Assembly: GCA_973895155.1 (NCBI GenBank)
Contig: OZ316898.1
Location: forward strand, 2,083,927 to 2,147,926
Length of the DNA stretch: 64,000 nt
Source: Marsupella aquatica
Lineage: Eukaryota > Plantae > Marchantiophyta
Direction of reading: 5' to 3'
Made by a program: the position numbers and the translations under genes. Positions 5,541-62,280 of this stretch are shown here, in pieces; the first letter of the stretch is position 1; each line of letters starts with the position of its first letter. The notes under the pieces are model-generated. The model was not told the DNA's origin, did no database searches, and saw only the letters and a program-made list of their open reading frames with translations.

Positions 5541-7112
5541 TTGGCTGTTAAACAAACAGATCCTATGAGCTATGTTTGAACAATCAAGCTTCACGGTGTA
5601 AAAATTGCCCCGGTTGACAATAGTGTTCCAAAGCAGTATCCATAACTCGAACAATAGTGCCTTGCCAGCTCGCACTAGAGCACGTCGCAAAACTACCCTA
5701 GGATCTCGCTTTGCATCAGCCGGTCCACCAACATTGGGCTCTGGATAGAAGTCCTCTTGGGTTTCACCATCTTGCTCTCTCTGCAGCGCAGTATCCTCGG
5801 GTGTCCATGCATCCTGCCTGTGAAGCACATAGTTATGCAATTTCCCACACAAATTGATCCACCTTACCATCCATAGGCTGTCCTTCTTTGAATTCAATTG
5901 AGTTCGAACTTCTTTTAAAGAATGCCATCTGCTCTTCAAAACTCCAATGCAGTGCTCATTGGTTACCCTGCACTTGGCAACACAAGTAGTGAAGTTCTCT
6001 TTATCTGGTACCATGTCAGTCCTTTTAAATGCGGAAACCAGGTGTGGAAGGGCCTGATAGCCTGAATCTCCTAAAATGTACTGGTCAGATTCAAATAGAG
6101 CATTCCTTCTGACATCAGTCAGAAAGGAAAAGAGTGGAGACTTTTGCTCACAAGTCAAGTCGGAGCATGATCCAGGCATTCCTATAGCAAGGCACAAATA
6201 GCAGTAGTCATTGGTTGATATTGGAATGCCCCTTGTATCAACCAATGATCTGTACATTGGCTCACCTGAGAACAAGAACATGATTCTTCTGTGGTGGTCA
6301 CAGACCACCTGTACATTTATGGAATATCGACTCTTGCGATCATAGTAGCACTCTCCATGAACGCCAAGATGCTGAGCCAAGGGGCACAGGCTTCCATCAA
6401 TCAGACCGATACAGCCTGGAAATCCTAACCTTGCAAATGCCTCCAAACTTGCAGCTCGTTCCCTGCTGGTAGGCCACTAGATATAGTCGCTTAAAACATC
6501 ATCCAAAGCCTCAAAGGTACGTTTTGAGTAGTTGACAATTGAACCACAACTCACACCCCATGTGGGGATCATATGATTTAAGCAAGCACCATTCCCATCA
6601 TGACCAAGCCTGTCTAGGCAGACAGCTAATTGGGCCTCAATAGGTGCTTGCTGACAATTAGATTCATTCTGGAAGATAGGGTGTCCTTCAATCAAGCCTA
6701 GAAGGTGATAGAAAGAGGACTTGTCCATCCTAGTGAGTTGCCTAAACAAAGGATCTGCCAAGCAATGAAAGAACTGTTGTGCAAATTCCTTAGATTTCAG
6801 GCTCACATGACGATGAACAATAACGAGTATTATACAACACAAAATATAGCTCTAAGAGGTCTGTTGGATTCTCATCATTCTCCAAATCCTCTTCCCTATT
6901 TTGATCCTCAGATGAGCTATCCAAAGGCAGTCTGAATCACTGTCAGTCCTCTCAGAAATATGAGAGTCAACTTCAGAGAATCCATGGAGGTCAAGGTCTT
7001 CAGATCCAGTATCTTGAGAACTCTTCGAACTCTGAACAACAATGGCTAGTTCAAGTTGTTGTTTGACTCGTTTCAAGCCTCTCTGCCTGTTTGAAAAGCG
7101 AGGCATGTTCAA
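5538..7112 (-). pseudogene. PIF/Harbinger DDE transposase (DDE_Tnp_4/HARBI1-like), disabled
   Basis: HTH region 'FRQLTRMDKSSF...QLAVCLDRLGHDGNGA'; catalytic motifs GFPGCIGLIDGS, YILGDSGY and NEHCIGVLKSRW. There is an 84-nt GT-AG intron at 6265-6182, an in-frame TAG at 6479-6477, and frame changes near both ends. Confidence 0.88.
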
Positions 7113-9921: not shown

Positions 9922-11610
9922 ATGCCTGGGAGGTGACGAGGTTTTTTTATGACAGGTTTTTCCAGCGTTCATTGTCGATGGTACATTCAGAGTTTCGTCG
10001 CATGAAACTTGATTGTGTGTGGCTGAGCGGATAGGTTAGTGAGTTCTAACGGTGGTTAGAGCTCGCTGATCGGTATCCGTGGTGCGGAGGAATTAAAGTT
10101 TGCGTCGTTCAGGGTTTATTCGTGTTCGACGGTATTTTCGGGGGAGAAACCAGAGATCATTTCTTCAACGATGTGAGCTGTGCGGTGTGCGGGGTGTCGC
10201 ATGTGATAGTTCAAGTTGAAGGTTGGAGCGTGCTGGTCATTTTGGTATCTAGTTTGCTGACGTTTGCGAAACAAGTGCGTCGTGACGAGTGAAGGAGGCG
10301 TTCTGGTTTTTTGACAAGCTATGGTGCTTGTTTTTCCCTAAACCGGATTACTCGTCGTGACGCTTGACTCGGAGGAAGAAATGCAAAGTGTTGAGGCTCA
10401 ACGGAGAGATCATGGCGAGACGGTCATTTTGAGTCCGGGATTGGCACTTGACGCGGAGTGAAGGTGACGCAACAGAAGTTCTTTCTCCGGTGGAGCTTCA
10501 GACGTGCCGGTGCAATTCGGAAACATTTTCATGTCGGCGGTCATCACTTTTCTCATTGGAAACCAAAGCGGAGGCGGCTGAGGTTTGTAACACGGCCTTT
10601 GTGTCATTTTGGGCACATTTTTAAGGTTAGTTTAGGGCATTTTTTGTCCCAATACGGCCCCAATACCCGACAAAACAGGTTCGCCATACGCCCCGGCGTG
10701 CACACCGGCCTCCCACACCCCTTTAAGCGCAAAACATGCTTTTTTGGGCCCAAATACGGCCAAAAACGCCCATACACGGCCCAAAAATGCGAAAATACAC
10801 GCGCTTTGACCCCTTTAAACCCATTTTTTCACGTTTTTTGCTGTTTATACGCGATTCTGGCCGCGAATACGCACGCATTGCCGCGAATATGTGCGCCTTT
10901 GCCAGGGGCTTTAAGACCCCTTTAGAGAGTGTTTTTCTGATTTTTTTTCTCTCCTCCTCCTCATTGGTTGTGCCTCATCCCGGGCCCTATGACCCTCCGT
11001 TTAGGGGGAACGACCCCCTGTGAGCCCTGTTGGACTGTGCGGGAATATTCCCAAAAAAACATAGAGCTGTTTTTCGGCCATCACACAAAGATTCCGTCCG
11101 CAGCACGGTAACTTTTTTGGTTCTTTTTTGGTGAGGACGGTGCCACTGGAGTTAGCAACGCGGCGCACCGATCACATCGCGATTCCGACGACAGGTTGTA
11201 CTTGGTATTTTGGTTATTCTCCGAGGTGGTCAAAACGGGGGAGTTTCCCAAGGTTTTACCCACCCTGACCAAAATTTGAATAACTTTTCTGTCGAATTTC
11301 AATTTTGATTTTGGATTTCAGTATTGGACTCCTAGCTTTGTGGGCTACGCGGCGGTGTTGAGTTTTGAGTTTTATGAGAAGTTTCAAAAAAAGACTTTTT
11401 TCGTGATTGTTTCATATGAGTGACTCGGAGGATATTGGAAGAATTGGCATCGGTGGAGCTTCAGGATCGAGACGGTCAGACGGAAAGTCAGAGGAGGAGC
11501 TGCTACCGTTTGAGGAGGAACTTATAACACCGGTACGATCATCGGTGTGACGTGCAGTGAAGGAAGCCGTGTTACTACCAGAGCTATCGGTAGTAGGGAA
11601 GAAGAGGGAG

Positions 11611-12513
11611 ATGGCTAGATTTGGAGGAGTGAAATTTGAGGTGGAGCAGTATGATGGTCGTACTGATTACTTGCTCTGGGAGAAGCAAGTGAAGGGTGTT
11701 CTACGGGCCATGGGCTTAGCTCATCTGCTTTCATCGCGAGAGCAGTATGATGGAGAGGAGGAGATTTCAGTGAGGCAATGGAGACAGGAGCAGGTGATTG
11801 CTGTCAATGTAGTGATGCTATATCTCAAGCCGCACATCATCAAGCAGCTAGATGATTATGCGGATTGCGCGTCACTATTCAAGGCTCTAAGAGAGAAGTA
11901 CTACCGGGAAGATGCGTCAGACCGGCTGTACAAGAAGTCTCTCTTGATGAGCCTTAGGCTCAAGGAAGGGAGCAAGATGCAGGATCACTTGGATGAGTTT
12001 GACAGTCTAGCGGTTGATCTGTCAAACCTGGGAAAAGGAGTTGAAGATGAGGATAAGGCCTTGCTTCTGCTAAGCTCCTTACCGCCGTCATATCAGGGCT
12101 TGAAACAGGTGCTCTTGTACAGAGATTTGAAGTCCATTTCGTATAATGAGGTGGTAAGCTCTTTACTGTCTGATGATGCTCAGAAGAAGCTCGGTCAATC
12201 ACAAACAGCATCTTCTTCTGGCACTGCGCTCAATGTGAACAGGGGAAGAGCAACGCAGCGTACAAATGGGCAGAACAGGTTTAGATCTACATCACGGGGG
12301 AGATCTAAATCCAGAGGAAAATTGCAAGAGAGGAAGCCTCTTGCATGTAAATCCAGAGGAAAATTGCAAGAGAGGAAGCCTCTTGCATGTTGGAATTGTG
12401 GCAAGCCACGCCACATGAAAAGGGATTGTCGAGTAAAGGTCCCTACTGTCTCTGCTAACGCAGCATCAAGCTCGTATGAGGTAGATTTACTCGATGATGA
12501 TGACATATTGTGA
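11611..12513 (+). CDS. gag: Copia Gag protein
   Basis: 'KFEVEQYDGRTDYLLWEKQVKGVL', UBN2-like 'DKALLLLSSLPPSY' and zinc knuckle CWNCGKPRHMKRDC. Confidence 0.9.
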   Translation: MARFGGVKFEVEQYDGRTDYLLWEKQVKGVLRAMGLAHLLSSREQYDGEEEISVRQWRQEQVIAVNVVMLYLKPHIIKQLDDYADCASLFKALREKYYREDASDRLYKKSLLMSLRLKEGSKMQDHLDEFDSLAVDLSNLGKGVEDEDKALLLLSSLPPSYQGLKQVLLYRDLKSISYNEVVSSLLSDDAQKKLGQSQTASSSGTALNVNRGRATQRTNGQNRFRSTSRGRSKSRGKLQERKPLACKSRGKLQERKPLACWNCGKPRHMKRDCRVKVPTVSANAASSSYEVDLLDDDDIL

Positions 12514-15500
12514 TGTCAAGGTTATGCTCTCAACGTAGTGTCAAATCCAGGTAGTGATGATTGGATTCTAGATAGTGCATGTACTTTTCACATTTGCTCT
12601 AGAAGAGATTGTTTCAGTTCTTACACGGTTTCCAACGGGTCAGTGTTGATGGGAAATGAAATCCCATGTCAAGTTGTTGGACTTGGATCTGTAAGATTTC
12701 AGATGTCTGATGGTGCTGTGAGAACATTGAGGAATGTGAGACATATTCCCAGCATGATGAAAAATCTCATTTCACTTGGAGTTTTAGAGGCAAATGGCCA
12801 TCAATGGAGTTCTGCTAATGGTGTCCTTCAGGTTTCAACTGGTACTAAAGTTGTATTGAAGGGAAAGAGACATTGCAATCTATACGTTATGGAGGGCAGT
12901 GTAGTCTATGATGAAGCCAATGTAACCTTATCTCATGAGGAGACGGCCCGGCTATGGCACTTCCGTTTGGGCCACATGAGTGAAAAAGGTTTGGTTATTC
13001 TTCAGAAGAAAGGATTACTTTCTAATTTGCAATCTTGTAAGTTGGAATTTTGTGAGCACTGTGTGCTAGGGAAGCAGCACAGGAAACCCTTCGGAGTTGG
13101 AACTCACACCAGCAAGGAGGTACTTGAGTATGTACATAGTGATGTGTGGGGTCCCGCCCTTACTCCCTCACATTCTGGACGGTTATACTATGTCACGTTC
13201 ATTGACGATACTCAAGGTATGTGTGAATATACTTTCTACACAATAAGTATGATGTTTTTGCCACTTTTAAGGAGTGGAAAGCCCAAGTTGAAAATCAGAC
13301 TGGTAATAAGGTGAGATATCTTCGATCGGATAACGGCGGTGAATATAGTTCCGATGAATTTGGAACGTATTGTAAAGAGCAGGGGATTACCCGCCATCTC
13401 ACAACAAGCTATACTCCTCAACAGAATGGTGTTTCTGAGAGACTCAACCAAACACTATTGGACCGCTTGAGGAGTATGTTGAGTCAATCATGCTTACCAC
13501 ATGAGTTTTGGGCTGAAGCTGTCAATACTGCAGCTTATTTGGTAAAATTTTCTCCATCCAGTTCTATTGGATTCAAGACTCCATTTGAAATGAGGTACGG
13601 GCGTCCAGCAGATTACTCACATCTGAGGATTTTTGGATGTGATGCTTATGTGCTTACACCTTCCCAGCTTCGATCCAAGCTGGAGTCCAAGTCGAAGTAC
13701 TGCATTTTCCTTGGTTATCAGAAAGGTGTGAAGGGTTATAGGTTATGGGATCCAGTAACCTGTAAGCTAATTGTCAGTAGAGATGTGTCTTTTAATGAAT
13801 CTAGATCATCAAAGGAGGGGGAGAGTTCTCAGGACTCCCATACTGACAAGGGGAAATCTCCCATCCCGGACCGGGTTGAGGGGGAGATTAGTCATGATGC
13901 AGTTCATGACAGGAGAGATGGAGAAGCTCCGGGCTTGGAGCTGGTTCCTATGATGGAACAAGAGGAGAAAATTGTTGTTGGGGTACCTAAAATTCAACCA
14001 GCAGTAGCAACAGATCAGCCTGAGTCATCTACTAGAAGAACTTCAAGTCTTTCTACTAGAGCTCCTACCAGGTATGGTCAATGGGCAGACTCATCTAAGC
14101 TAGATGATATTGACATTGCACCTGATGAAGATGATATGGCTTTGATCTTGGAAGAAGGAGAGCCTTCTTCGTATAGTGAGGCTTGTGCTTCAGAGCAGAA
14201 GCATGAGTGGAATGCAGCAAATGCAGAGGGAGTTGCAATCTTTGAGTGACAACAAGACATGGGAGCTGGTGGAGCTTCCAAGAGGTCAACAAGTGGTGGA
14301 CAGCAAGTGGATTTACAAGTTGAAGGACAGTCCTTCAGAGGGTGGAGATAAGATCTACAAGGCAAGGCTTGTTGCCAAGGGGTTCACTCAGGAGAAAGGA
14401 GTGGATTACAATGAGGTCTTTTCACCGGTGGCTAAGTATTCCACAATTCGGATCTTGTGTCAGCTTGTTGTGTTTTTTAATCTGGTGATGGATCATATGG
14501 ATGTTGTTACTGCTTTTCTCTATGGCAACTTGGAAGAGATGATCTTCATGAGACAGCCACTAGGCTTTATGAAGAAGGGCCAAGAGAACTTAGTTTGCAG
14601 ATTGCTCAAATCCTTGTATGGATTGAAGTAGTCTCCCAGACAGTGGAACAAGCGGTTTGATGATTTCATGCTTGCTCAAGGTTTTACAAGGATGGTGTAT
14701 GATCCTTGTGTGTATACAAAATTAGTCAAGAATGATGTATTTGGTTTCATCATTCTGGTGATCTATGTGGATGACATGCTAATTGTGGCTAAAGATCAAT
14801 CTGAGGTTGACAGTCTCAAGGCAAAATTGAGCGCTGAATTCAAGATGAAGGATCTTAGTAAGGCCAAGAGGATCTTAGGGATGGAGATTTTTAGGAACTC
14901 TGAGACTGGACAGTTGTGCTTGAGTCAAGGCCAGTATGCGAGGAAAGTACTTGCACGAATTCAACATGAAGAACTGTAAGCCAGTGAGTATTCTTTTAGC
15001 TTCACATTTCAAGTTATCATTGGCTTTCTCTCCTACAGATGTTGTGGAGAAAGGTCTGATGGCTAAGATTCCTTATGAGAAGGCAGTAGGCAGTCTAATG
15101 TATTTGATGACTTGTACTAGGCCTGACTTGGCCCTAGCGATGGGCAAGGTTAGCAGATTCATGTCAAATCCAGGGAAGGTACATTGGGAAGCTGTGAAAT
15201 GGATTCTCAGGTATGTGAAGGGAACACAGGACTATGGATTACTATTTGATAACAGATCAAATAGAACGTTAGTTGGCTATGTAGATTCTGACTATGGAGG
15301 CTGTCTGGATACAAGGAGATCTACAATTGGGTTTGTATACACTCTTGGAGGAGGATGTATCAGTTGGAAATCTACCTTGCAGAAGTGCATATCTCAGTCT
15401 ACTACAGAAGCAGAGTATGTTGCAGTAGCAGAAGCTGCAAAGGAAACAATTTGGTTGGATAAGTTGATCGCGGAGATGGGTTTAGAGCATGGAAAAATGA

Positions 15501-15733
15501 CTCTAAACTGTGATAGTCAGAGTGCTCTTCACTTGGCTGCTAACCAAGTGATGGATAGCAAGGTGAAGCACATTGATATCAAGTACCATTTTATCAGGCA
15601 AGCAGTGTCTGATAAAACTTTTGAGCTAGTCAAGATTGATGGAAAGCTCAATCCCGCTGATGCCTTTACCAAAGTGATTCCTTTGGAGAGTTTCTCAAGA
15701 CACCGTGCTACTTTGCAGGTTTTGCAGTTGTAG
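12514..15733 (+). pseudogene. pol: Copia Pol (protease, integrase, reverse transcriptase, RNase H) with frameshifts and stops
   Basis: WILDSAC (PR); WHFRLGH...CEHC, HSDVWG and RSDNGGE (INT); KARLVAKGF and YVDDM (RT); YVDSDY and KHIDIKYHF (RH). Frame breaks near 13210, 14220 and 14955; TAG at 14629-14631. Confidence 0.93.
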
Positions 15734-19785: not shown

Positions 19786-21919
19786 TTATTCACTTTTGAG
19801 TGTGGATACTTCAAGCACGGCCAGTGGGTAGGGAAAGTCTTTCAGGGCCAGTTGCCTTGAATGCGGCAACCTGTGGACTCTGCCCCCATCCTGACCTCCT
19901 TTTCCCATCCATAATTTCAAAGCAATATTTACTCACGTCACAAGATTCTGGGTATGCCTGGAACCTTAACCAGACATGGCTTACACACCCAGAGCCAAAC
20001 CCAGAGCCAAATCTGTACAGGCACGGCATTCCCTTTATGCAGACTACAGCCTTTGCACCTAGAGTGTTATGGAATATAGCTAGCCATCGGGTGGGTTTGA
20101 CCAAAATATAGCTAGCCAGATCGAAATAAAGCAAATTCAAGACTTTGGTAGTCTCTGTGGGTAGGGAATATGGACAACAGAACAGTGTGGGAACGTGGGG
20201 TACCGCATTATTCTCTGATTGAAAATAGTATTGTCATTTGGAAGACCCTCTGCACCCGTTTCTGAATGCAGTATAATATCTTCAACAAAAGTCGAGGAAA
20301 TTGATGAAACTGCATATCAGAGAATTGGAGAGGAAAAGAAGCACAATCGGATGTGAAGAGCTCGAGCCTAGCCTCAGGTCCTCCACGATCGATACACCAA
20401 GATCAAAGAGTAGTAAGTTCATCAATATGGAACAAAATGCTGGGGTCGAGGGCAGAAGTCTAGGCTATGCTTCTGATTTGCTACGGTACTCGACGTCTAC
20501 AAGCGTTCTACTGCTTGTTGGAGTGTTGACTCTCGTGATTGGCGTGGTGAGCTATGGATCGTGGAGGAAGAAGATTACCAATTTGCCACCGGGGCCCCGC
20601 AATTGGCCAGTCATTGGAGCCCTCTTGGAGATGGAGCCGCTCTTCTACAGGACCTGCGAGAAATTCTCAACGAAGTACGGGCCCGTCGTGTTCTTCCGCT
20701 TGGGAGTTCAATCCATGGTGGTGGTGTCCTCCGGCGAGGCTGCAGAACAGCTTCTGAAACACAAAGACGCGGAGTTTTGCCACAGAACCACCGCAATGAC
20801 CAGATCTGCTGTGAAATACGTAGCGATCGGTGGAAAAGGCCTTCCGTTCTCGAACTACGATGCTGAGTACAAACTGCACAGAAAGCTCCTCGTTACGGAG
20901 AATTTCACCTTGGCAAAGCTCAAGACATCCGAGAAGATCCGGACCCACGAGATGGCAGTCATGGTGGAGACGATAGTCAGCGTAAGCCGGAGCAGTGGCC
21001 ATAGTTCCAAAGTTAGCGAAGAAAATAGTATCACTTCGCCGATTGGCATGCGGTCCACTGTAATGACCATGATCCAGAACATCTTGTTTTCGCTGGCCGT
21101 CGGCAAGAGGTTCGATAGTTTGCCGCCCACGGACAAGCTGAGGGTATTCCCGGAATTGTTGGACAGGCTACTGAAGATCTTCATGGAAGTGAACTTGGTA
21201 AGACAAAGTTCACAGTAGAGCAACAAGCATGGATATCTGAAACATAAGATCATGAATCCTGTTTTTCTTAGTCATATGGTCTGTTTAAGAATTGTCATTC
21301 TGACGGAAACCTCCATAGCTGTTCAATTAAGGTGACAATTCTTTCTAACCCTGAGATGTACTGAACGGCTCCACTGTGCTCCTACGCAGCTAGAAATGAA
21401 ATGAGCTGCTTTTTGTTCTCATCAATTATTGACCTCCAAAGGGTGGCCATTAGGCTAGAGTGTATCAATTACGCGTCTCTTTCCGCTCGAACACCTTGTA
21501 ATCGAGCTAAATTCGATGTGAAGGGTTTTCTATGCCATGGATGATTGCCGAAACACTACCGACGTACAGTGGTCTGCCTGTTTCCGATGAACTACAATGA
21601 ATACAGGACGTAGACTTGTGCATCGTGAGCAGGATTCGCCACGCAATTTGTAATTAACAACTCATATTGCGGCTGTCCGGGTGCAGGTAGATTTGTTCCC
21701 ATGGTTGACGTGGTTTGATCCGCAAGGGTTGGTGAAGATGATGGGAAAGTTTAGCAAAGACCAGAGTCAATTCTACGATAATCTATTCGAGGCGACCAGG
21801 CGAGAAATGAAGCATAAGAGTGAGTCCGGAATTTGGAACGATGCCGACGAACGAAGCTCGGACCGGAGTCTCGTGCATGTTCTTCTCAGGGCTCAAGAAG
21901 AAGGTCAGCTAGACTCATA

Positions 21920-27054: not shown

Positions 27055-29507
27055 ATGGAACAAAATGCTGGGGTCGACGATAGAAGCTAGGCTCTGCTTC
27101 TGATTTGCTATGGAACTCGTCGACAAGCGTTCTACTGCTCGTTGGAGTGGTAACTCTCGTGGTTGCCGCGGTGAGCTATGGATCGCGGAGGAAGAAGATT
27201 ACCAATTTGCCACCCGGACCCCGCAATTGGCCAGTCATTGGAGCCCTCTTGGAGATGGAGCCGCTCTTCCACAGGACCTGCGAGAAGCTCGCAACGAAGT
27301 ACGGGCCCGTCGTGTTCTTCCGCGTTGGAGTTCAATCCATGGTGGTGGTGTCCTCCGGCGAGGCTACAGAAAAGCTTCTGATACACAAAGACGCGGAGTT
27401 TTGCGACAGAAAACCGCCACGACCAGGTCTGCTGCGAAATATACAGTGATCGGTGGAAAAAGCCTTCCCTTCGCGAACTACGATGCAGAGTTCAAACTGC
27501 ACAGAAGGCTCCTCATCACGGAGAACTTCACCTTGACAAAGCTCAAGACATTCGAGAAGATCCGGACTCACGAGATGGCAGTCATGGTGGAGACCATAGT
27601 CAGCGTAAGCCGGAGCAGTGGCCGTAGCTCGAACGATAGTGAGGGTAATAGTACCTCTTCGCCGATTGCCATCCAGTCGACCGTAATGACCATGATCCAG
27701 AACATCTTGTTTTCGCTGGTCTTCGCCAAGAGGTTCGATAGTTTGCCGCCCACAGACAAGCTGAGGGTATTCCCGGAATTGTTGGACACGGTTCTGAAGA
27801 TCTTCATGGAAGTGAACTTGGTAAGACAAAGTCTGCAGTAACCTTAGATATCTAAACACTATAATATCAATCCGCTTTTTCTTTATGTTAAGGGAAGCGT
27901 CCAAGGCTGTTCAATTATGGGGACAAATTTCCTGAATATGTGTGAAATCAGTTAACGGCTCCGCTGTGCACCAAGCAGGGCAGAATGTACCATCGGTTGG
28001 GATGGGAAATGAAATGACATGCTTTTTGTTTTCACCAATTATTGACCTCCAAAAGGACGGGCATTAGGCCAGTGTGGATCAATTACCCGTCTCTTTCCGC
28101 TTGAACACCTTGCAATCCAGCTGAATTCGATCTGAACGGTATTCTTTGCCATGGAAGATGCAGAAAGGCCACCGACGTACATTGTCTGACTGTTCCCAAT
28201 GAACTATTAATAATGTAAACAGGTCTGAGGTAGACTTGTGCATCATGAGCAGGAATCCCCGGGAAATTTGTAATTAACAACTGACATTGCGGCTGTCCGG
28301 GTGCAGGTAGATTTGTTCCCATATATGGTTGGCGTGGTTGGATCCTCAAGGGTTGCTGAAGGCGATGCACAAGTTTAGCAACCAAAAGAGACAATACTAC
28401 GAGACGCTCCTCGAGACGACCAGGCGAGAAATGAAGCATAAGAGTGAGTCCGGAAATTGGAGCGATGCCGACGAAGGAAGCTCGGGCCGGAGTCTCGTAG
28501 ATATTCTTCTCAGTGCTCAAGGAGCAGGTGAGATTCGGGGTGAAATTCTCCCGCAGCTAAACTCATGCCCCATTTACAGCATTGACTATTTGTTTATTCT
28601 TTCGGGTGTCAAGCAAGCTAAGGTAACCATGTGAAGACAACAACCGTGTGTGTGTAAGTGCACCCACGGGAAGAAGGGCTACCATACACAAGATGCACTT
28701 AATAAAACTGATGGACTACTGTGGACTGTTTACTCAATGATCCTGTGCGTAACTATTGATTCACGTACGTAATTCAGGTTCCTTGATCGATAATTCTGCG
28801 AGAGAGGCTTCATGCAATAGTTATTTCGATTATTTGCCACCCTTCTTATTAATAATTACACTCTAACAAATACTCATTTGGGTTACTTAAATTTGTTTTC
28901 CATCTGAATCACTAGGCACCAATATAACCGAGCAGGGTATCATGATGATAATCAATTGCGCTATGGCTGGTGGTACCGACACCGCCAGTTCCCAAGTGGA
29001 GTGGGTGCTACTAGAGGTAGCACGTCACCCGAAGGTGTTGCAAAGACTGCAGGATGATATTGATGGTGTCGTTGGTATAGAACGGCCTTTGGAAGAGGCT
29101 GACCTCCAAGCTATGCCATTCTCAATGCTGTCATCTTGGAATCTATGCGCTTGCATGGGGCTGTGCCTTGCTCGTTTCCTCACGTCAACTTCAGTTGAAG
29201 CCTTCAACCATGTGTGAGTAACCAACCTATAGTAGTGAGACCCGTAGTGAGACTCATTAAGAATTCAGTCGGGGATTCAATTTGAGCATCCTTGCAAGTG
29301 CACGAATTAACAAACTGAACTTTGAATCAATTTGTGTTTAGTTCAATGTTTCATTTCGTAGAATAGAGTTATTCTGAAGCAGAACGAAATCAAATTGCAA
29401 CCGTAATTGATAATCGAGCATTTCAATGGATATTGATACTCGTCATGCATTAGCTTTACAGTCAAAAACTCACTGACATTCTCTCGAGTTGGAATACGAT
29501 CAGGTGG
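27055..29507 (+). pseudogene. Cytochrome P450 (CYP71 clan), copy 2, frameshifted and lacking the heme exon
   Basis: Co-linear with copy 1. Frameshifts near 27087, 27410, 28325 and 29120; GGTDTA I-helix present. The exon-4 acceptor at 29503 is followed after 4 nt by 3' UTR-homologous sequence. Confidence 0.9.
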
Positions 29508-41320: not shown

Positions 41321-42661
<1,341 letters not shown>

Positions 42662-51146: not shown

Positions 51147-54100
51147 ATGTTTTCTTGTTGTTCGGGTGGGGGCTCGACTTCTAAAAGTCCGGACGCATGT
51201 GTATCAAAGAGACTCGAAGTCGATGCCCGAAAGGTATTGATCCCACTGTGCAAACCACAGCACTGCAATAGATCGCTGTCTACTCTGAACTTTTTGTTTC
51301 CAAAATTCTGCTGTGCTCTCCCTTCGCAAACGAAAAGGTAACCCTTTTACACCTAAAATTGACTGATCAGACACTAAAGTTTGAAGGAATTGTGACCACT
51401 TTGGCAATGGATACCTTGGTACTAGCCTGGCAATCATGTTCGATCTAGTTACTTGGCTGCACTTCTGGTTCACTCGGTGTCTCTGATCGATGTTGGCAGG
51501 TGAACGATTCCTTGTACGAGTTGTGGAGGCCATCAGGCACTCCTGAGATGGAGCTTTTATTTTTCCATGGACTCCAATCTGGAGACTCATCAGATGCCCA
51601 TTTACGAACATGGGAAACCGAGGATGGTTCTTCACTTTGGCCCCAGACTTGGTTGGCTCAGGAGTTTCCCACTGCCCGCATATTATGTGTTTCATTTGAT
51701 GGCGCTGTGAGAAAGTGCTCAGGGGGCTTCGACATGCACATCATAGTGGAGAACCTGCTCTCCGATTTCATGCAGGGAAATATTGGACAGACTCCCAATT
51801 GTCCGGTTGTGTTGATTGGCCACTGTTTTGGAGGATTGGTGATTGAAAAACTGTGTTGGGAAGCCAATAACCGGAAGCACGCTGGATTGGAGAGTGCGAG
51901 GGCTAAGGTTGGTGCCTTGCTTGAAAATGTGCAAGGAGTATTTTTCTATGGTACTCCTCACCACGGGACTCCGGGCCTAAGCAAAGCAACAAAATTGGTG
52001 AAGAACAGCCCATTGCTAAGTTTCTACAAAACTTTGAGCAAAGAAGCTAGCAGGCTTGATTTTGAATTTAATCAATTACGTCGAGTTTATGCAACTTGGC
52101 AAGTCTGGGGACTGGGAGAAACTCTCCCAACTGATTGGGTATGAACAATTCTTCACCTCCTGTTGCTTTTTCTAATTTCTATGACTTTGTTCGTCAACTC
52201 CCATAGCTTATCTTGCTAGCTTGTTTTATCCCGTTCGTGTGGTTTTGTAGGGTATATTTCAAGGTGTAGTGGCAGCACCAGAACAGTCTGCTAGAAAAGG
52301 AGATCATTTTAACCTTTTGCCAGTAGACCACCTGTCCATTTGTAAGCCCAAAAATACATCTGACAAGAGGTTTTATTTTCTAACGGAGCTTCTTCGCATC
52401 ATATCAAGAAACTCACAGGTGAGATGGCTCTATCCTACCCTACACCTAAGTCGAGATACATGTTCAAGACAGAACCATCCAATAGGAGTGAATAATATAG
52501 CAGTTATACACAACGATAGGAGCAGATAGAAAAGGCAAGCCTACTAAACTCTAGAGGAATCTCTGAAGCAGACTCAATTCTCTTTGATTGTTTTGAATTC
52601 TAGATACAGATTAAGTGGAAAGTTAGGTTCTATTGAGATTAGTATAAGCGTTACCTGTTTTTCCAATCCCACCTTGTTAGTAGGGCAGGATGATGATTGG
52701 CTGGTATTTGCAACCTATGAGAGCAATCACTAAAATCTGCCTGGGGCCTGGTCATCGCTTTCTGGCATTTGTTGAAGAGAGATTCTAAGTAGTCCCAAAA
52801 TTTGGCTAGGGTCAATTTAGGTTGCTAATGGTAACAAAGTTCTTTTTACACATTACCCCATAGTTCACCACTCATCTAGCTTTAGGAACTTTGTAGAGGT
52901 GACCAAATTATGCGCTTCAACCAGAAATGATTATCGTCAGAGTGACCATTGTAGTTGCTATGTATTGGGAAAATGCATGTACAGATGAGCTGATTCAAAT
53001 TATCTGACCTCGTCAGGTGGCGGTGACTGTTCATGAAGTTTATGGGCTTCCAAAGTATCCTCTTGATTTGAGGAGACGAGCCCTGGATGTGAAGGACAAG
53101 CTCATTCGCGGAGCTACTCTTGGAATTTTTGGCATGGGTGGGATTGGCAAGACCACTCTTGCAAAACAGGCATTTAACATTATGTCCGAAGACTTTGAGT
53201 ACACGTGCTTTGTGGATAATGTGAAAAACATCCCACTACACGAATTGCAGGATCGAGTTCTCAGTCGTTTTCACCACAATGGGAAGAAATCAGATAAGGG
53301 TTCAACCGAGTGGTTTCATATGCAGGACAAGTCAGCTTTAGTTGTCATGGATGACGTAGATGCAGAGGATCAGCTCAAAGTTCTACCACAATTGCAGCAT
53401 TTTGGGACTGGCAGCCGTGTTATCATGACAAGTCGGGATAAAGAAGTTTTCAAATATTATGAGCGTTGCATCATCCATGAGGTTGAGTTTTTGAAACACG
53501 ATGAAGCAAAGAAGCTACTCTGCCAACATGCATTTGGATTGAAGGATGTTCCAGACTTTCTGATTGACAATGTCAATGCAGTGGTTAAAAAATGTGAAGG
53601 GTTGCCCTTGACTTTGGAAGTGATAGGCACATACCTTCGAGACCATGGAGCAAGTGTTCAAGTCTGGAATGAAACTCTACATAGGTTGAGAGAAGCACGA
53701 GCCATAACTGGAGACAAAAGGGACAGAGTGTGGGCTTCCTTGAGGATAAGCTATGATGCCCTGTTACCAGAGGAACAGGAGATGTTCACAGCGGCTGCAT
53801 CGTTTTTCTTTGAACAGCCATTGGACCGGGCCCTTGCAGCATGGAGCAGTCTCACGCAAGCAATGCAGACAACGTGGGGAAACTTGGTGAACAGGTCATT
53901 GGTGAAAGAAATCAACAACAGAGTATGGGTCCACGAGCACCTTCGAGACTTGGCTCAGACTATTTCCAAGGACAGCATTGTTTTGGGGTCTAATGATACC
54001 ACAAACTCAGCAGTGGATCAGTTGAATGACAAGGAGGTAATCGTTCTTCCCAGCATAATTTAGGATTTCCCCCTCTCCTCAGATTTACCTGCTTTGTACA

Positions 54101-57100
54101 CCACTACTTGTAGCTAAGAGATACTGATTTCAGATTCATGTTATCAACTTGCAGGTCACAGCAGGGGGGATAGCAATGAAATATTTGAGGCTTGAGTATT
54201 CTGCCGGTTTCCACACACGAAAGATCCTTCAGTTAGATTCGCTGGCTAAACTAACGGGACTAAAATACATGGATCTAATTGGTGTTTCCTCAGAAGGTTC
54301 GGGAAAGGGTCTCACAAAGAGCATATCTTTGCTAGGTATGTATGGATCACCAGGACCCCAACCGCAGAGAAAGTTCGAGTTCAGCCTCAACAAAATGGAG
54401 AACTTAGCTGTCCTGGAACTATCAAATTGTCGGATCCCACAGGAGTTTCCTGAAGAATTGGGGAACCTGACCAATCTGCGCATTTTGTGTCTTTCTAACC
54501 TAGCGGGGTTGGCCCATCTGCCTGACAATTTTGGGAACCTATCAAGATTGACACGGTTGGAGCTGGAGGGTGTAAGATCACTCACATTGCCAAAATCATT
54601 TGGCAACCTCCTAGCCCTCGAACATCTTGAATTTCGCTTGATACAATTCTTGGCGTTACCTCAAACCTTAGGGAATCTATCCAGCCTGGCAATATTCCGT
54701 ATTATGCAATATGCACGGCTTGAAAGTGCCTCAGTGACAATTACGGATGCTCATGAGCTGCGGACTATACCGGCCTCATTGACAATTTCGGATGCCCATG
54801 AGCTGCAGACTCTGCCGGACAGCTTTTCCTGTCTCAAGTCTCTTAAATATTTGGTATTAGAGTCCTCAAAATTGGAGAGTCTTCCCGATGACATGGGAAA
54901 CCTCTCTTTACTGGAAGAATTGTGGATCGCAGCACCAGGCTTGGAGGGCCTCCCAGATAGCATATGCAAGCTCGGTAATTTGAGGAAATTGACCCTCACG
55001 AAAGCTAAAAACTTGAAGGGCTTGCCGGAGAATTTCGGCCAGCTGCTGGAGCTCCAGCATTTGACAATTTGGGATGCCCATGAGCTGCAGACTCTGCCGG
55101 ACAGCTTTTACTGTCTCAAGTCTCTTAAATATTTGTCATTAGAGTTGGAGAGTCTTCCCGATGACATGGGAAACCTCTCTTTACTGGAAGAATTGCGGAT
55201 CCCAGCACCGGAGGGCATCCCACATAGCATATGCAAGCTCGGTAATTTGAGGACATTGACCCTCATGAAAGCTAAAAACTTGAAGGGCTTGCTGGAGAAT
55301 TTCGGCCAGCTGATGGAGCTGCAGCATTTGGAAATTTGGGGTGCTGATGAGCTGCAGACTCTGCCGGACAGCTTTTCCTGTCTCAAGTCTCTTAAAACGC
55401 TGACATTCGAGTCCTCAAAATTGGAGAGTCTTCCCGATGACATGGGAAACCTCTCTTTACTGGAAGAATTGTGGATCGCAGCACCAAGCTTGGAGGGCCT
55501 CCCAGATAGCATATGCAAGCTCGGTAATTTGAGGACATTGACCCTCAAGAAAGCTAAAAACTTGAAGGGCTTGCCGGAGAATGTCGGCCAGCTGATGGAG
55601 CTGCAGCATTTGGAAATTTCGGGTGCTGATGAGCTGCAGACTCTGCCGGACAGCTTTTCCTGTCTCAAGTCTCTTAAAAACCTGACATTCGAGTCCTCAA
55701 AATTGGAGAGTCTTCCCGATGACATGGGAAACCTCTCTTTACTGGAAGAATTGTGGATCGCAGCACCAGGCTTGGAGGGCCTCCCAGATAGCATATGCAA
55801 GCTCGGTAATTTGAGGAAATTGACCCTCACGAAAGCTAAAAACTTGAAGGGCTTGCCGGAGAATTTCGGCCAGCTGCTGGAGCTCCAGCATTTGACAATT
55901 TGGGATGCCCATGAGCTGCAGACTCTGCCGGACAGCTTTTACTGTCTCAAGTCTCTTAAATATTTGTCATTAGAGTTGGAGAGTCTTCCCGATGACATGG
56001 GAAACCTCTCTTTACTGGAAGAATTGCGGATCCCAGCACCGGAGGGCATCCCACATAGCATATGCAAGCTCGGTAATTTGAGGACATTGACCCTCATGAA
56101 AGCTAAAAACTTGAAGGGCTTGCTGGAGAATTTCGGCCAGCTGATGGAGCTGCAGCATTTGGAAATTTGGGGTGCTGATGAGCTGCAGACTCTGCCGGAC
56201 AGCTTTTCCTGTCTCAAGTCTCTTAAAACGCTGACATTCGAGTCCTCAAAATTGGAGAGTCTTCCCGATGACATGGGAAACCTCTCTTTACTGGAAGAAT
56301 TGTGGATCGCAGCACCAAGCTTGGAGGGCCTCCCAGATAGCATATGCAAGCTCGGTAATTTGAGGACATTGACCCTCAAGAAAGCTAAAAACTTGAAGGG
56401 CTTGCCGGAGAATGTCGGCCAGCTGATGGAGCTGCAGCATTTGGAAATTTCGGGTGCTGATGAGCTGCAGACTCTGCCGGACAGCTTTTCCTGTCTCAAG
56501 TCTCTTAAAAAGCTGACATTCGAGTCCTCAAAATTGGAGAGGCTGCCCGACGACATGGGAAACCTCTCTTCACTGGAAAACTTGCGCATCACAGCACCAA
56601 GCTTGGAGGGCCTCCCAGATAGCATATGCAAGCTCGGTAATTTGAGGACATTGACCCTCAAGAAAGCTAAAAACTTGAAGGGCTTGCCGGAGAATTTCGG
56701 CCAGCTGATGGAGCTGCAGCATTTGGAAATTTGGGGTGCTGATGAGCTGCAGACTCTGCCGGACAGCTTTTCCTGTCTCAACTCTCTTAAAAAGCTGACA
56801 TTCGAGTCCTCAAAATTGGAGAGTCTTCCCGATGACATGGGAAACCTCTCTTTACTGGAAGAATTGTGGATCGCAGCACCAAGCTTGGAGGGCCTCCCAG
56901 ATAGCATATGCAAGCTCGGTAATTTGAGGACATTGAACCTCATGAAAGCTAAAAACTTGAAGGGCTTGCCGGAGAATTTCGGCCAGCTGCTAAAGCTCCA
57001 GGATTTGAGAATTTGGGATGCCCATGAGCTGCAGACTCTCCCGGACAGCTTTTCCTGTCTCAAGTCTCTTAAATATTTGGTATTAGAGTCCTCAAAATTG

Positions 57101-60100
57101 GAGAGTCTTCCCGGTGACATGGGATACCTCTCTTCACTGGAAAAATTGCGCATCACAGCACCAAGCTTGGAGGGCCTCCCAGATAGCATATGCAAGCTCG
57201 GTAATTTGAGGGAATTGACCCTCAAGAAAGCTTAAAACTTGAAGGGCTTGCCGGAGAATGTCGGCCAGCTGATGGAGCTGCAGCATTTGGAAATTTCGGG
57301 TGCTGATGAGCTGCAGACTCTGCCGGACAGCTTTTCCTGTCTCAAGTCTCTTAAAAACCTGACATTCGAGTCCTCAAAATTGGAGAGTCTTCCCGATGAC
57401 ATGGGAAACCTCTCTTTACTGGAAGAATTGTGGATCGCAGCACCAGGCTTGGAGGGCCTCCCAGATAGCATATGCAAGCTCGGTAATTTGAGGAAATTGA
57501 CCCTCACGAAAGCTAAAAACTTGAAGGGCTTGCCGGAGAATTTCGGCCAGCTGCTAAAGCTCCAGGATTTGAGAATTTGGGATGCCCATGAGCTGCAGAC
57601 TCTCCCGGACAGCTTTTCCTGTCTCAAGTCTCTTAAATATTTGGTATTAGAGTCCTCAAAATTGGAGAGTCTTCCCGGTGACATGGGATACCTCTCTTCA
57701 CTGGAAAAATTGCGCATCACAGCACCAAGCTTGGAGGGCCTCCCAGATAGCATATGCAAGCTCGGTAATTTGAGGGAATTGACCCTCAAGAAAGCTTAAA
57801 ACTTGAAGGGCTTGCCGGAGAATGTCGGCCAGCTGATGGAGCTGCAGCATTTGGAAATTTCGGGTGCTGATGAGCTGCAGACTCTGCCGGACAGCTTTTC
57901 CTGTCTCAAGTCTCTTAAAAACCTGACATTCGAGTCCTCAAAATTGGAGAGTCTTCCCGATGACATGGGAAACCTCTCTTTACTGGAAGAATTGTGGATC
58001 GCAGCACCAGGCTTGGAGGGCCTCCCAGATAGCATATGCAAGCTCGGTAATTTGAGGAAATTGACCCTCACGAAAGCTAAAAACTTGAAGGGCTTGCCGG
58101 AGAATTTCGGCCAGCTGCTGGAGCTCCAGCATTTGACAATTTGGGATGCCCATGAGCTGCAGACTCTGCCGGACAGCTTTTACTGTCTCAAGTCTCTTAA
58201 ATATTTGTCATTAGAGTTGGAGAGTCTTCCCGATGACATGGGAAACCTCTCTTTACTGGAAGAATTGCGGATCCCAGCACCGGAGGGCATCCCACATAGC
58301 ATATGCAAGCTCGGTAATTTGAGGACATTGACCCTCATGAAAGCTAAAAACTTGAAGGGCTTGCTGGAGAATTTCGGCCAGCTGATGGAGCTGCAGCATT
58401 TGGAAATTTGGGGTGCTGATGAGCTGCAGACTCTGCCGGACAGCTTTTCCTGTCTCAAGTCTCTTAAAACGCTGACATTCGAGTCCTCAAAATTGGAGAG
58501 TCTTCCCGACGACATGGGAAACCTCTCTTCACTGGAAAAATTGCGCATCACAGCACCAAGCTTGGAGGGCCTCCCAGATAGCATATGCAAGCTCGGTAAT
58601 TTGAGGACATTGACCCTCAAGAAAGCTAAAAACTTGAAGGGCTTGCCGGAGAATTTCGGCCAGCTGATGGAGCTGCAGCATTTGGAAATTTGGGGTGCTG
58701 ATGAGCTGCAGACTCTGCCGGACAGCTTTTCCTGTCTCAACTCTCTTAAAAAGCTGACATTCGAGTCCTCAAAATTGGAGAGTCTTCCCGATGACATGGG
58801 AAACCTCTCTTTACTGGAAGAATTGTGGATCGCAGCACCAAGCTTGGAGGGCCTCCCAGATAGCATATGCAAGCTCGGTAATTTGAGGAAATTGACCCTC
58901 AAGAAAGCTAAAAACTTGAAGGGCTTGCCGGAGAATGTCGGCCAGCTGATGGAGCTGCAGCATTTGGAAATTTCGGGTGCTGATGAGCTGCAGACTCTGC
59001 CGGACAGCTTTTCCTGTCTCAAGTCTCTTAAAAAGCTGACATTCGAGTCCTCAAAATTGGAGAGTCTTCCCGATGACATGGGAAACCTCTCTTTACTGGA
59101 AGAATTGTGGATCGCAGCACCAAGCTTGGAGGGCCTCCCAGATAGCATATGCAAGCTCGGTAATTTGAGGACATTGAACCTCATGAAAGCTAAAAACTTG
59201 AAGGGCTTGCCGGAGAATTTCGGCCAGCTGCTAAAGCTCCAGGATTTGAGAATTTGGGATGCCCATGAGCTGCAGACTCTCCCGGACAGCTTTTCCTGTC
59301 TCAAGTCTCTTAAATATTTGGTATTAGAGTCCTCAAAATTGGAGAGTCTTCCCGGTGACATGGGATACCTCTCTTTACTGGAAGAATTGTGGATCGCAGC
59401 ACCAAGCTTGGAGGGCCTCCCAGATAGCATATGCAAGCTCGGTAATTTGAGGAAATTGACCCTCATGAAAGCTAAAGACTTGAAGGGCTTGCCGGAGAAT
59501 TTCGGCCAGCTGATGGAGCTCCAGCATTTGGATATTTTGGGTGCTGATGAGCTGCAGACTCTGCCGGACAGCTTTTCCTGTCTCAAGTCTCTTAAAAAGC
59601 TGACATTCGAGTCCTCAAAATTGGAGAGGCTGCCCGACGACATGGGAAACCTCTCTTCACTGGAAAAATTGCGCATCACAGCACCAAGCTTGGAGGGCCT
59701 CCCAGATAGCATACGCAAGCTCCTTAATTTGAGGACATTGTGTCTCAGCAACGCTAAGAAGTTGAACAGCTTGCCCGAGGATTTCGGCCAGCTGATCGAG
59801 CTGCAGCATTTGGAAGTTGGTGAGGCTGATGAGCTGCAGACTCTACCGGACAGCTTTTCCTTTCTCAAGTCTCTGAAAAAGTTGATATTAGAATCCTCAA
59901 AATTGGAGAGGCTTCCCGATGACATGGGAAACCTCTCTTTACTGGAAGAACTGTTGATCGCAGCACCAAGCTTGGAGGGCCTCCCAGATAGCATACGCAA
60001 GCTCGGTAATTTGAGGGAATTAACTCTGAGCAACGCTAAAAACTTAAAGGGCTTGCCGGAGGATTTCGGCCAGCTAATGGAGCTGCTGCATTTGGCAATT

Positions 60101-62280
60101 GGTGATGCTGATGAGCTGCAGACTCTACCGGACAGCTTTTCCTGTCTCAAGTCTCTTAAAAAGTTTACATTAGAATCCTCAAAATTGGGGAGGCTTCCCG
60201 ATGACATGGGAAACCTCTCGTTACTGGAAGAATTGTGGATCGCAGCACCAAGCTTGGAGGGCCTCCCAGATAGCATACGCAAGCTCGGTAATCTGAGGGA
60301 ATTGACCCTGAAGAACGCTAAAAACTTGAAGGGCTTGCCGGAGAGTTTGGGCCAGCTGATGGACCTGCAGCATTTGGAAATTTGGGGTGCTCATGAGCTG
60401 AAGACTCTACCGGACAGCTTTTCCTGTCTCAAGTCTCTTAAAAAGTTGGCATTAGAATCCTCAAAATTGCAGAGTCTTCCCGATGACATGGGAAACCTCT
60501 CTTTACTGGAAGAATTGTGGATCGCAGCACCATGCTTGGAGGGCCTCCCAGATAGCATACGCAAGCTCGGTAATTTGAGGGAATTGACTCTGAATAACGC
60601 TAAAAACTTAAAGGGCTTGCCGGAGGATTTCGGCCAGCTAATGGAGCTGCTGCATTTGGCAATTGGTGATGCTGATGAGCTGCAGACTCTGCCGGACAGC
60701 TTTTCCTGTCTCAAGTCTCTTAAGAAGTTTACATTAGAATCCTCAAAATTGGGGAGGCTTCCCGATGACATGGGAAACCTCTCGTTACTGGAAGAATTGT
60801 GGATCGCAGCACCAAGCTTGGAGGGCCTCCCAGATAGCATTCGCAAGCTCGGCAATTTGAGGGAATTGACCCTCAAGAAAGCTAAAAACTTGAAGGGCTT
60901 GCCGGAGAGTTTCGGCCAGCTGATGGAGCTACAGCATTTGGAAATTTCGGGTGCTGATGAGCTGCAGACTCTGCCGGACAGCTTTTCCTGTCTCAAGTCT
61001 CTTAAAAAGTTTACATTAGAATGCTCAAAATTGGAGAGACTGCCCGACGACATGGGAAACCTCTCTTTACTGGAAGAATTGTGGATCGCGGCACCAAGCT
61101 TGGAAGGCCTCCCAGATAGCATAGGCAAGCTCTGTAATTTGAGGACATTGACTCACAAATTTTAGAGACTTGAAGGGCTTGCCGGAGGATTTCGTCCAGC
61201 TGATCGAGCTGCAGGACTTGGGGATTTCGGGTTTTGATGAGCTGCACACTCTTACCGGACATCTTTTCCTGTCTCAAATCGCTTCAAAAGTCGACATTAC
61301 AATGCTGATAATTGGCAAGGCTTCCCAAGAACATGGGAAAACTCTCTTTACGGGAAAAATTGTGGATCGGCACCAAGCTTGGAGGGCCTCGCATATAGCG
61401 TACTTCAGCTCCGTAATTTGAGGACATTGACTCTCACCAATGCTGAAAACTTGAAGAGTTTGCCGGAGGATTTTGGCCAGCTGAGCGATCTGCAGGATTT
61501 GACAATTTGGGATGCCGATGAGCTGCAGACTTTACCGGAGAGCTTCTCCCGTCTCATGTCTCTTAAAAAGTTGACATTAAAGTGCTCAAAATTTGAGAGG
61601 CTGCCCGACAATTTCGGAAAACTCTTTTGCATAGAAGAATTAAATATCCGGTCAAGAAGCTTGGAAAGTCTGCCGGAGAGCATACGGCAGCTTCAGTCGC
61701 TGGAAAATATGAACCTTGCGGCGGGAAAAAGCGAGAGGAATCTACTAGATAGCATCGGACAAATTTCATCGTTACGTAAGTTGGAATTCGATTGCGATGG
61801 GCATGAGGAGACACCCGACCTTTTTGAACCCTTTTAATGCTTTGAACATGAGCTAATTCTCACAGGGCGAGGTACACGGATCCTGCCGCAGGTTTGGGTA
61901 GCCTTTCCTCATTAAAAGCCCTGGGTCTGAAACAGTTACCGCTTTTGGAGACGTTACCGGATGATGTTGGAACTCTCTCTTCTCTAGAACGCTTCACCGT
62001 GATGGATTGTAATATGTTGGAGAGCCTTCCGGACAGTTTGGGGCAAGTCTCTTCTCTGAAAGACGTCATGTTTGTCAGTTGCCAGAGACTGAAGACTCTG
62101 CCTGAAAGCTGGGGAAAGTCCGCGATTCAACGAGAATTGCTGCAAGGAGACCTTTCTGTTGAGCATAGGTTGCAAACAGAGGAGTCCTCCCAGACCAAGA
62201 AAACGGAGGTGATGCCACTAATCATTATAGGGTGTCCCTTGATGAGTCGAAGCGGGGAAGTTTCGGTCACCCAATTCTAA
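51147..62280 (+). CDS. Alpha/beta-hydrolase-NB-ARC-LRR immune receptor (HNL-type NLR) with giant LRR array; open frame ends at a premature TAA at 57233-57235
   Basis: Phase-0 exons 51147-51233, 51500-52138, 52251-52418, 53017-54036 and 54155 onward. Hydrolase motifs LLFFHGL, WPQTWL, GHCFGG, FFYGTPHHG and DHLSICKP. NB-ARC motifs: P-loop GMGGIGKTT, LVVMDDV, GSRVIMTSRD, GLPL and VHE. LRRs continue to about 62110. The protein is about 1660 aa up to the first stop. Confidence 0.92.
54779..61700 (+). repeat. Intragenic tandem array of about 25 x 282-bp units (94 aa = 4 LRRs of 23/23/24/24 aa)
   Basis: 'LQTLPDSF' recurs every 282 bp (267 bp in a deletion variant), with higher-order 831-bp and 564-bp duplications. 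Confidence 0.97.

Follow-up and report, generated by a model that had tools for sequence, protein, structure and literature searches.

How does one and the same premature stop codon come to stand twice, exactly 564 bp apart, in a single gene? The question arises in a 64,000-nt stretch of the genome of the liverwort Marsupella aquatica (GenBank assembly GCA_973895155.1, contig OZ316898.1, positions 2,083,927 to 2,147,926; called the window below and numbered from its first letter), which contains a predicted hydrolase-NB-ARC-LRR (HNL) gene, that is, a nucleotide-binding leucine-rich repeat immune receptor (NLR) gene, with a long tandem array of leucine-rich repeats (LRRs). We favor, with a probability of roughly 0.7, the reading that this is a young nonsense allele of a liverwort HNL-type gene, in which the stop was copied by unequal exchange within a recombination-prone array. 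The event belongs to ordinary NLR birth-and-death dynamics and calls for no new mechanism; the locus is a new and unusually large liverwort HNL example.

The same stop codon lies in both copies of a 564-bp duplication

A preliminary description of the locus had reported a stop at 57233-57235 and again 564 bp further on, inside identical blocks. We confirmed that both TAA codons are in frame, and that the blocks 56945-57508 and 57509-58072 show 0 mismatches in 564 positions. Exact identity at offset 564 extends over 612 nt (56944-57555 = 57508-58119), which corresponds to two full copies plus a common 48-nt tract. The features concerned are as follows.

57233..57235, plus strand: first TAA, in frame, replacing AAA (Lys) in ...LTLKKA(K)NLKGLP
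57797..57799, plus strand: second TAA, in frame, a copy of the first
56944..57507, plus strand: copy 1 of the 564-bp duplication, made up of array unit F* with its TAA and most of unit C
57508..58071, plus strand: copy 2 of the 564-bp duplication, exactly identical at offset 564

Both stops stand in the context AAGAAAGCT-TAA-AACTTGAAG, and they are the only stops in the LRR frame that runs for ~7 kb from 54125 to 61163. At the equivalent codon, 19 of the 20 other units carry AAA and the remaining one AAG; TAA is found just in both F* copies. The 45-nt context occurred twice with TAA and once with AAA (at 60859), where 0 occurrences were expected in shuffles. The stop was copied; two independent identical mutations are not credible.

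The array consists of near-identical 282-bp units and is still turning over

54728..61166, plus strand: tandem LRR array, 23 units of 282 bp (three of 267 bp, one of 280 bp), with four LRRs per unit
59195..59476, plus strand: unit F', the older paralogue of F*, with 8 differences from F* and AAA at the stop position
55557..56268, plus strand: upstream copy of a 712-bp perfect direct repeat, with its partner at 57798-58509
57798..58509, plus strand: downstream copy of the 712-bp repeat, beginning right after the T of the second TAA

Tandem Repeats Finder returned a period of 282, 24.4 copies and 89% matches over 54784-61608. We cut the array into units that start right after the stop-site codon, and computed a unit-by-unit distance matrix. 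The units follow each other in the order A S B C S B D E F* C F* C S G H I F' J K L M L' N, and two decayed units come after them. Here, S is a 267-bp variant and F* is the carrier of the TAA; the three C copies are identical to each other, as are the three S copies. Units 3-8 (C S B D E F*) are collinear with units 11-16 (C S G H I F'); over 1677 bp, at an offset of 2241, 30 differences separate the two stretches. A second long perfect repeat, of 821 bp, was found upstream (54860-55680 = 55691-56511). The freshness of the 821- and 712-bp repeats shows that the array is turning over continuously, and is doing so now.

The differences between the two six-unit blocks fall mostly into clusters of ~20 nt, at 56289-56309, 56571-56591 and 57135-57155, which swap whole variants of a module; the LRR segment variants LLEELWIAAP and SSLEKLRITAP are exchanged in this way. 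These module-swap clusters are consistent with patchy, short-tract conversion between units. Minus-strand open reading frames (ORFs) of up to 700 aa also run through the array, at 55108-60282, and are most simply a by-product of its repeat composition.

A hybrid junction points to a duplication after the nonsense mutation

57508..57555, plus strand: 48-nt recombinant junction tract, identical to 56944-56991 and 58072-58119

We compared the flanks of the three occurrences of the 48-nt tract. At 56944 the left flank is of the E type and the right flank of the F* type, and at 58072 the left flank is of the C type and the right flank of the S type. The middle tract, at 57508, is flanked on the left by C-type and on the right by F*-type sequence, and so combines the left side of the third with the right side of the first. 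Hybrid flanks around an identical tract make this the kind of junction that unequal exchange or slippage predicts: the copies lie head to tail, and the hybrid junction sits in a tract common to both parental boundaries. Furthermore, deleting one 564-bp copy puts both copies of the six-unit block exactly side by side. Together, the hybrid junction and the adjacency of the six-unit blocks favor a true duplication, after the nonsense mutation, over conversion.

We propose three steps, read from the sequence, with their consequences for the gene product inferred. In the first, a six-unit block of 1677 bp would have doubled to give (C S B D E F)(C S G H I F'). In the second, a single A-to-T substitution in the last Lys codon of unit F would have turned AAA into TAA. 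In the third, unequal exchange in the 48-nt tract common to the E/F and C/S boundaries would have doubled the 564-bp F*-C segment and copied the stop with it, whether by a crossover between sister chromatids or homologues or by replication slippage. With 0 differences in 2 x 564 bp, the duplication would be younger than roughly 0.3-2.7 million generations, a rough bound for which we assumed substitution rates of 1e-8 to 1e-9 per site.

The junction and the block adjacency thus bear out the earlier proposal that the stop is older than the 564-bp duplication and that array turnover went on after truncation. That proposal had left duplication and conversion side by side as the route by which the stop spread; duplication is now the favored one, and conversion needs extra assumptions. 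By conversion, the array would already have had its present number of units, and a tract of at least 564 bp would have overwritten two existing units with F*-C, with no expansion. Patchy conversion is indeed evident in the module-swap clusters described above, but the observed patches measure ~20 nt, not 564 nt. Conversion would also require that two extra units, since erased, had stood exactly between the six-unit blocks, and the junction sits in the longest tract common to both boundaries. We therefore consider conversion quite improbable as the origin of the second stop.

The gene is predicted to encode an HNL-type immune receptor

The closest proteins were Calypogeia fissa P0001 (1601 aa; 53-68% identity) and, next, NB-ARC proteins of Riccia and Marchantia. 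We derived the exon model from tblastn with P0001 and from splice sites read in the sequence, and ran Pfam and homology searches on single exons and inter-stop pieces, each separately. The model has five exons, and every intron is GT-AG and of phase 0.

51147..51233, plus strand: exon 1, with the ATG, 29 codons (MFSCCSGGG...), aligning with the P0001 N-terminus (MFSWFSGGG...); GT donor after 51233
51500..52138, plus strand: exon 2, alpha/beta-hydrolase-like domain with a GHCFGG elbow; tblastn identity 68% to P0001 and 35% to Riccia P0026
52251..52418, plus strand: exon 3, end of the hydrolase region, 56 codons, phase 0; tblastn identity 63% to P0001 residues 240-296, with AG/GT boundaries seen
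53017..54036, plus strand: exon 4, NB-ARC, with the P-loop, GLPL and MHD-like VHE intact; 61% identity to P0001
54155..57235, plus strand: exon 5 from its AG acceptor to the first TAA, 1026 aa with ~40 LRRs; Pfam LRR_14 E = 1.3e-109

The NB-ARC domain scored 124 bits against a Pfam cut-off of 23.5 (E = 7.9e-36; match at 53017-54060), and its motifs GMGGIGKTT, LVVMDD, GLPL and VHE could be read intact in the sequence. The C-terminal LRR domain was recognized on each open piece of the array (LRR_14 E = 1.3e-109 and 2e-129, plus LRR_8). For the N-terminal domain, the hydrolase assignment is only indirect. The region 51500-52141 gave a weak Pfam match to Abhydrolase_6 (17.8 bits against a cut-off of 26.3), and PDB matches to monoglyceride lipase, at the elbow, reached just E ~0.4. 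Between the hydrolase exon and the N-terminus of Riccia P0026, identity is 35% (E = 5e-34), and P0026 itself passes the DUF676 serine-esterase cut-off (25.1 against 20.3 bits).

The nucleophile-elbow position is occupied by Cys, both here (GHCFGG, 51818-51835) and in Calypogeia P0001 (GYCFGG, residues ~140-146). As both genera share it, this Cys is conserved and not a private change of the Marsupella gene.

The HNL class is defined by its hydrolase-NBS-LRR architecture and its pattern of phase-0 introns (PMC3352924), and the same liverwort class has been termed Hyd-NLR (PMC11218826). Three introns of the Marsupella gene match the sites of the class (52138/52251, 52418/53017 and 54036/54155; GT-AG, phase 0), and there is one extra phase-0 intron (51233/51500). 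By domain order and intron pattern, the gene is thus predicted to be a liverwort HNL-type NLR immune receptor.

A probable older truncation has left a decayed 3' end

61157..61447, plus strand: decayed end of the array, from the alignment of units 22-23
61619..62280, plus strand: relic of the C-terminal tail native to the family; 56% and 52% identity to the Calypogeia tail in two frames (tblastn)

Downstream of the open array, we found damage of several kinds. A 2-nt deletion at the end of unit 22 gives rise to the TAG at 61163, and unit 23 bears a +1 insertion, adjacent TGA TAA codons at 61306-61311 and a 2-nt deletion. In the tail relic, a TAA stands in frame at 61835, 1 nt is deleted near 61885, and the native stop TAA lies at 62278. 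The Calypogeia-type tail has a ...CPL... motif, which is found too at the native ends of paralogues P0004 and P0011.

In all, at least six lesions lie within 61157-61890 (~730 bp), compared to none in 2487 bp of unique 5' coding sequence, for which an equal lesion density would predict ~20 (Poisson P ~1e-9). The five 5' exons and the ~7 kb array are free of lesions, apart from the copied TAA. Confinement of the lesions to the 3' end suggests that the native tail was lost earlier, while the gene kept functioning or remained under purifying selection, on the assumption that unit 23 is no intron and that conversion has not refreshed the 5' exons. Evidently, truncation at the C-terminus had been tolerated once before. 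The present TAA would then be the newest step of an erosion that proceeds from 3' to 5': by then, the tail and the two final units were severed and decayed, and the 5' part of the gene remained constrained. A processed or long-dead pseudogene would carry disabling lesions along its whole length; here they are confined to 61157-61890.

A Calypogeia homologue carries an in-array stop of its own

The locus of P0001 (L001; Calypogeia fissa GCA_965154635.1, CBCUJL010000018.1) also contains an array, of 486 bp x 4.2 at 96% identity. In array copy 4, a change of CAG to TAG at L001:16103 ends the annotated P0001, and the other three copies have CAG. After this TAG the frame is open for 385 further codons, up to the conserved tail, and the annotation splits the region L001:14577-17263 into a 1601-aa gene and a 238-aa LRR gene. 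As read from the two loci, the Calypogeia stop is independent of the Marsupella TAA. A second relic of LRRs and C-terminal tail lies at L001:18150-18900, ~0.9 kb downstream of the Calypogeia gene, which suggests a partial tandem duplicate.

Among seven other liverwort HNL loci (L002-L008), we observed no large near-identical array and no stop before a long open LRR frame. In-array stops were thus present in two of two loci with large arrays and in none of seven without (Fisher P ~0.03), in a small and biased sample whose loci were picked via annotated proteins; the link between large arrays and in-array stops is suggestive only. Taken together, the decayed native tail in Marsupella and the stop in Calypogeia suggest that very large, homogeneous LRR arrays of liverwort Hyd-NLRs are unstable, with repeated shortening from the 3' end.

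The allele predicts a shortened receptor or a weakly expressed null

57800..61165, plus strand: part of the array that follows the stops, open in a single frame for 1121 codons, as far as the TAG at 61163; Pfam LRR_14 E = 2e-129

The predicted product measures 1664 aa to the first TAA; reading on to the next stop, the TAG at 61163, would give 2974 aa. The length of ~1660 aa and the ~40 LRRs given in the preliminary description agree with our computed 1664 aa and ~40 LRRs, and the 16 or so units that it placed downstream of the stops were counted here as ~14 intact and 2 decayed ones. We reasoned that the downstream frame is still open because the stop is young. Translated or not, the downstream units would be subject to the unequal exchange and patchy conversion that affect the rest of the array.

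Translation would end at 57233, leaving ~4 kb or more of untranslated array in the mRNA. A plant 3' untranslated region (UTR) of such length usually provokes nonsense-mediated decay. NLR transcripts are known targets of this pathway (PMC6032283). With this stop and so long a 3' UTR, the allele would therefore be a weakly expressed null or else yield a receptor of reduced length. The proteins of relatives are 1349-1604 aa long, and the truncated 1664 aa is near this family-typical size. That an earlier truncation was tolerated makes the shortened-receptor reading more plausible. To our knowledge, TAA-AAC-TTG matches no known plant read-through context. The array repeats offer, by chance, many in-frame GT/AG pairs that might serve an intron skipping the stops.

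The stops lie between long perfect repeats

Both stops are bracketed by the 712-bp perfect direct repeat (55557-56268 = 57798-58509), at an interval of 2241 bp, which is a multiple of three. The suggestion that a single recombination could erase the stops is therefore supported: deletion between the repeats would remove an in-frame 2241 bp and restore the open frame. The accompanying suggestions, that the downstream units serve as a silent donor reservoir and that receptor length is tuned, gained no such support. We saw no sign of selection on these units, and the older untranslated segment (61157-62280) has decayed; in this single genome there was no supporting indication of tuned length, and an open downstream frame is expected of a young stop.

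A selected switch or reservoir would mean that the 1664-aa form is functional, that the downstream units are kept as donors, and that the repeats reversibly remove or move the stops. It could draw on the in-frame 712-bp repeat interval, from which one deletion would lead to a long ORF, on the fit of the truncated length to family sizes of 1349-1604 aa, on the evident tolerance of an earlier C-terminal truncation, and on the presence of in-array stops in both large-array loci as opposed to 0/7 without. However, this argument draws on one genome, and on a tiny sample of loci chosen via annotated proteins. A young stop would by default leave the downstream frame open, the decay of 61157-62280 argues against selection for untranslated units, and the long 3' UTR is expected to trigger mRNA decay. 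We regard such a selected system as most unlikely.

Very doubtful, too, is a contingency-like locus, in which receptor length would reflect mid-array expansion by unequal exchange balanced against successive 3' truncation. If true, stops between long perfect repeats (712 bp) would be excised far faster than by point reversion, and a haploid, clonal liverwort would gain an immune receptor with heritable long/short or on/off variants; the Calypogeia homologue, with its independent in-array stop, would be a second instance.

Assembly error and other points that weigh against the favored reading

The second 564-bp block, or the TAA itself, might be absent from the real genome, produced by a mis-join through identical repeats or by short-read polishing in which a variant passed from one near-identical unit to another. 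With its several perfect repeats of 600-820 bp, the array is hard ground for assemblers, and a false join would give just the hybrid junction that we observed. We found no independent sequence of the species in the collections searched: word searches of protein collections, run with the NB-ARC exon and with the LRR exon's first 200 residues, gave nothing from the same species, with no match above 53% identity, and metagenome contigs, scanned for exact matches to the TAA/AAA context, gave none. Against an artefact, the array of ~7 kb is within the span of single long reads, assemblers tend to collapse rather than expand repeats, and an A-to-T substitution is atypical of long-read errors, among which homopolymer errors are indels. 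Moreover, an equivalent, independent stop is present in the assembly of another species, Calypogeia. An assembly or polishing artefact is, in our judgment, unlikely.

Several further considerations speak against the reading that we favor, a young nonsense allele copied by unequal exchange. The allele comes from a single assembly, in which a false duplication or polishing artefact within a near-identical array would look alike. The preference for duplication over conversion is one of parsimony only. The lesion-density argument presupposes that unit 23 is no newly evolved intron and that conversion from a paralogue has not recently refreshed the 5' exons. When we compared the flanks of the Calypogeia locus with the window by tblastx, just LRR and tail matches were returned; with flanks that lack synteny, the Calypogeia gene stays a homologue and not an established orthologue. 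Lastly, transcription, mRNA decay and protein are predicted here from genomic sequence alone.

Given a young nonsense allele copied by unequal exchange, the copied stop serves as an internal time-marker that would order three events within one allele: a block duplication, a nonsense mutation and a re-duplication. It would also indicate that unequal exchange in an NLR LRR array proceeds whether its units are translated or not, making the locus a concrete case for recombination-driven length variation. For annotation, gene callers will split or truncate bryophyte NLR loci of this kind.

Other content of the window

The region 11557-15733 holds the coding region of a Copia-type long terminal repeat (LTR) retrotransposon, in several ORFs, with gag, a zinc knuckle, a GAG-pre-integrase and an integrase with an SH3-like domain. 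At 5541-6446 (minus strand), 20301-21215, 27110-27838 and 41324-42022, we found a DDE_Tnp_4 (Harbinger/PIF-like) transposase fragment, two cytochrome P450 exon-like ORFs and an exon of a WDR5-like WD40 gene.

Comparison with known systems

The Marsupella gene shares with the HNL class (Xue et al., 2012, PMC3352924; Chia et al., 2024, PMC11218826) the order of hydrolase-like domain, NB-ARC and LRRs, and a liverwort origin. The same phase-0 introns are present within the N-terminal domain, between this domain and NB-ARC, and between NB-ARC and the LRRs. Compared to the HNL relatives that we examined, its LRR domain is ~3x longer and is built of a near-identical, 282-bp higher-order array. Unlike these relatives, the gene has lost its native C-terminal tail and bears a duplicated premature stop.

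In tomato Cf-2/Cf-5, flax L/M and Arabidopsis RPP5 and RPP8, LRR copy number varies by intragenic unequal crossing-over. A general statement on LRR copy-number variation by unequal crossing-over in resistance genes has been published (PMC6032283). The Marsupella array is like these genes in that coding LRR units appear to be won and lost by misaligned recombination, together with patchy exchange. It differs in being far longer and more homogeneous, and in that its duplicate carries a nonsense codon, so that the duplication can be ordered relative to truncation.

Truncated NLR products may have a function, play a regulatory part or be inactive, and NLR mRNAs that bear stops are known to be targeted for decay (PMC6032283). 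Like the NLR pseudogenes and truncated NLRs described there, the Marsupella allele has a premature stop by which part of the LRR domain is lost. The stops of N and RPS4 arise by alternative splicing of an intact gene, whereas the Marsupella stop is fixed in the genomic sequence.

Silent-donor systems include the chicken immunoglobulin pseudo-V genes, Neisseria pilS, Borrelia vls and the trypanosome VSG genes. In principle, the Marsupella locus shares with them untranslated homologous copies beside an expressed copy, to which they could donate by conversion. These systems, however, have dedicated machinery or demonstrated directional conversion, whereas the older untranslated part of the Marsupella gene has simply decayed.

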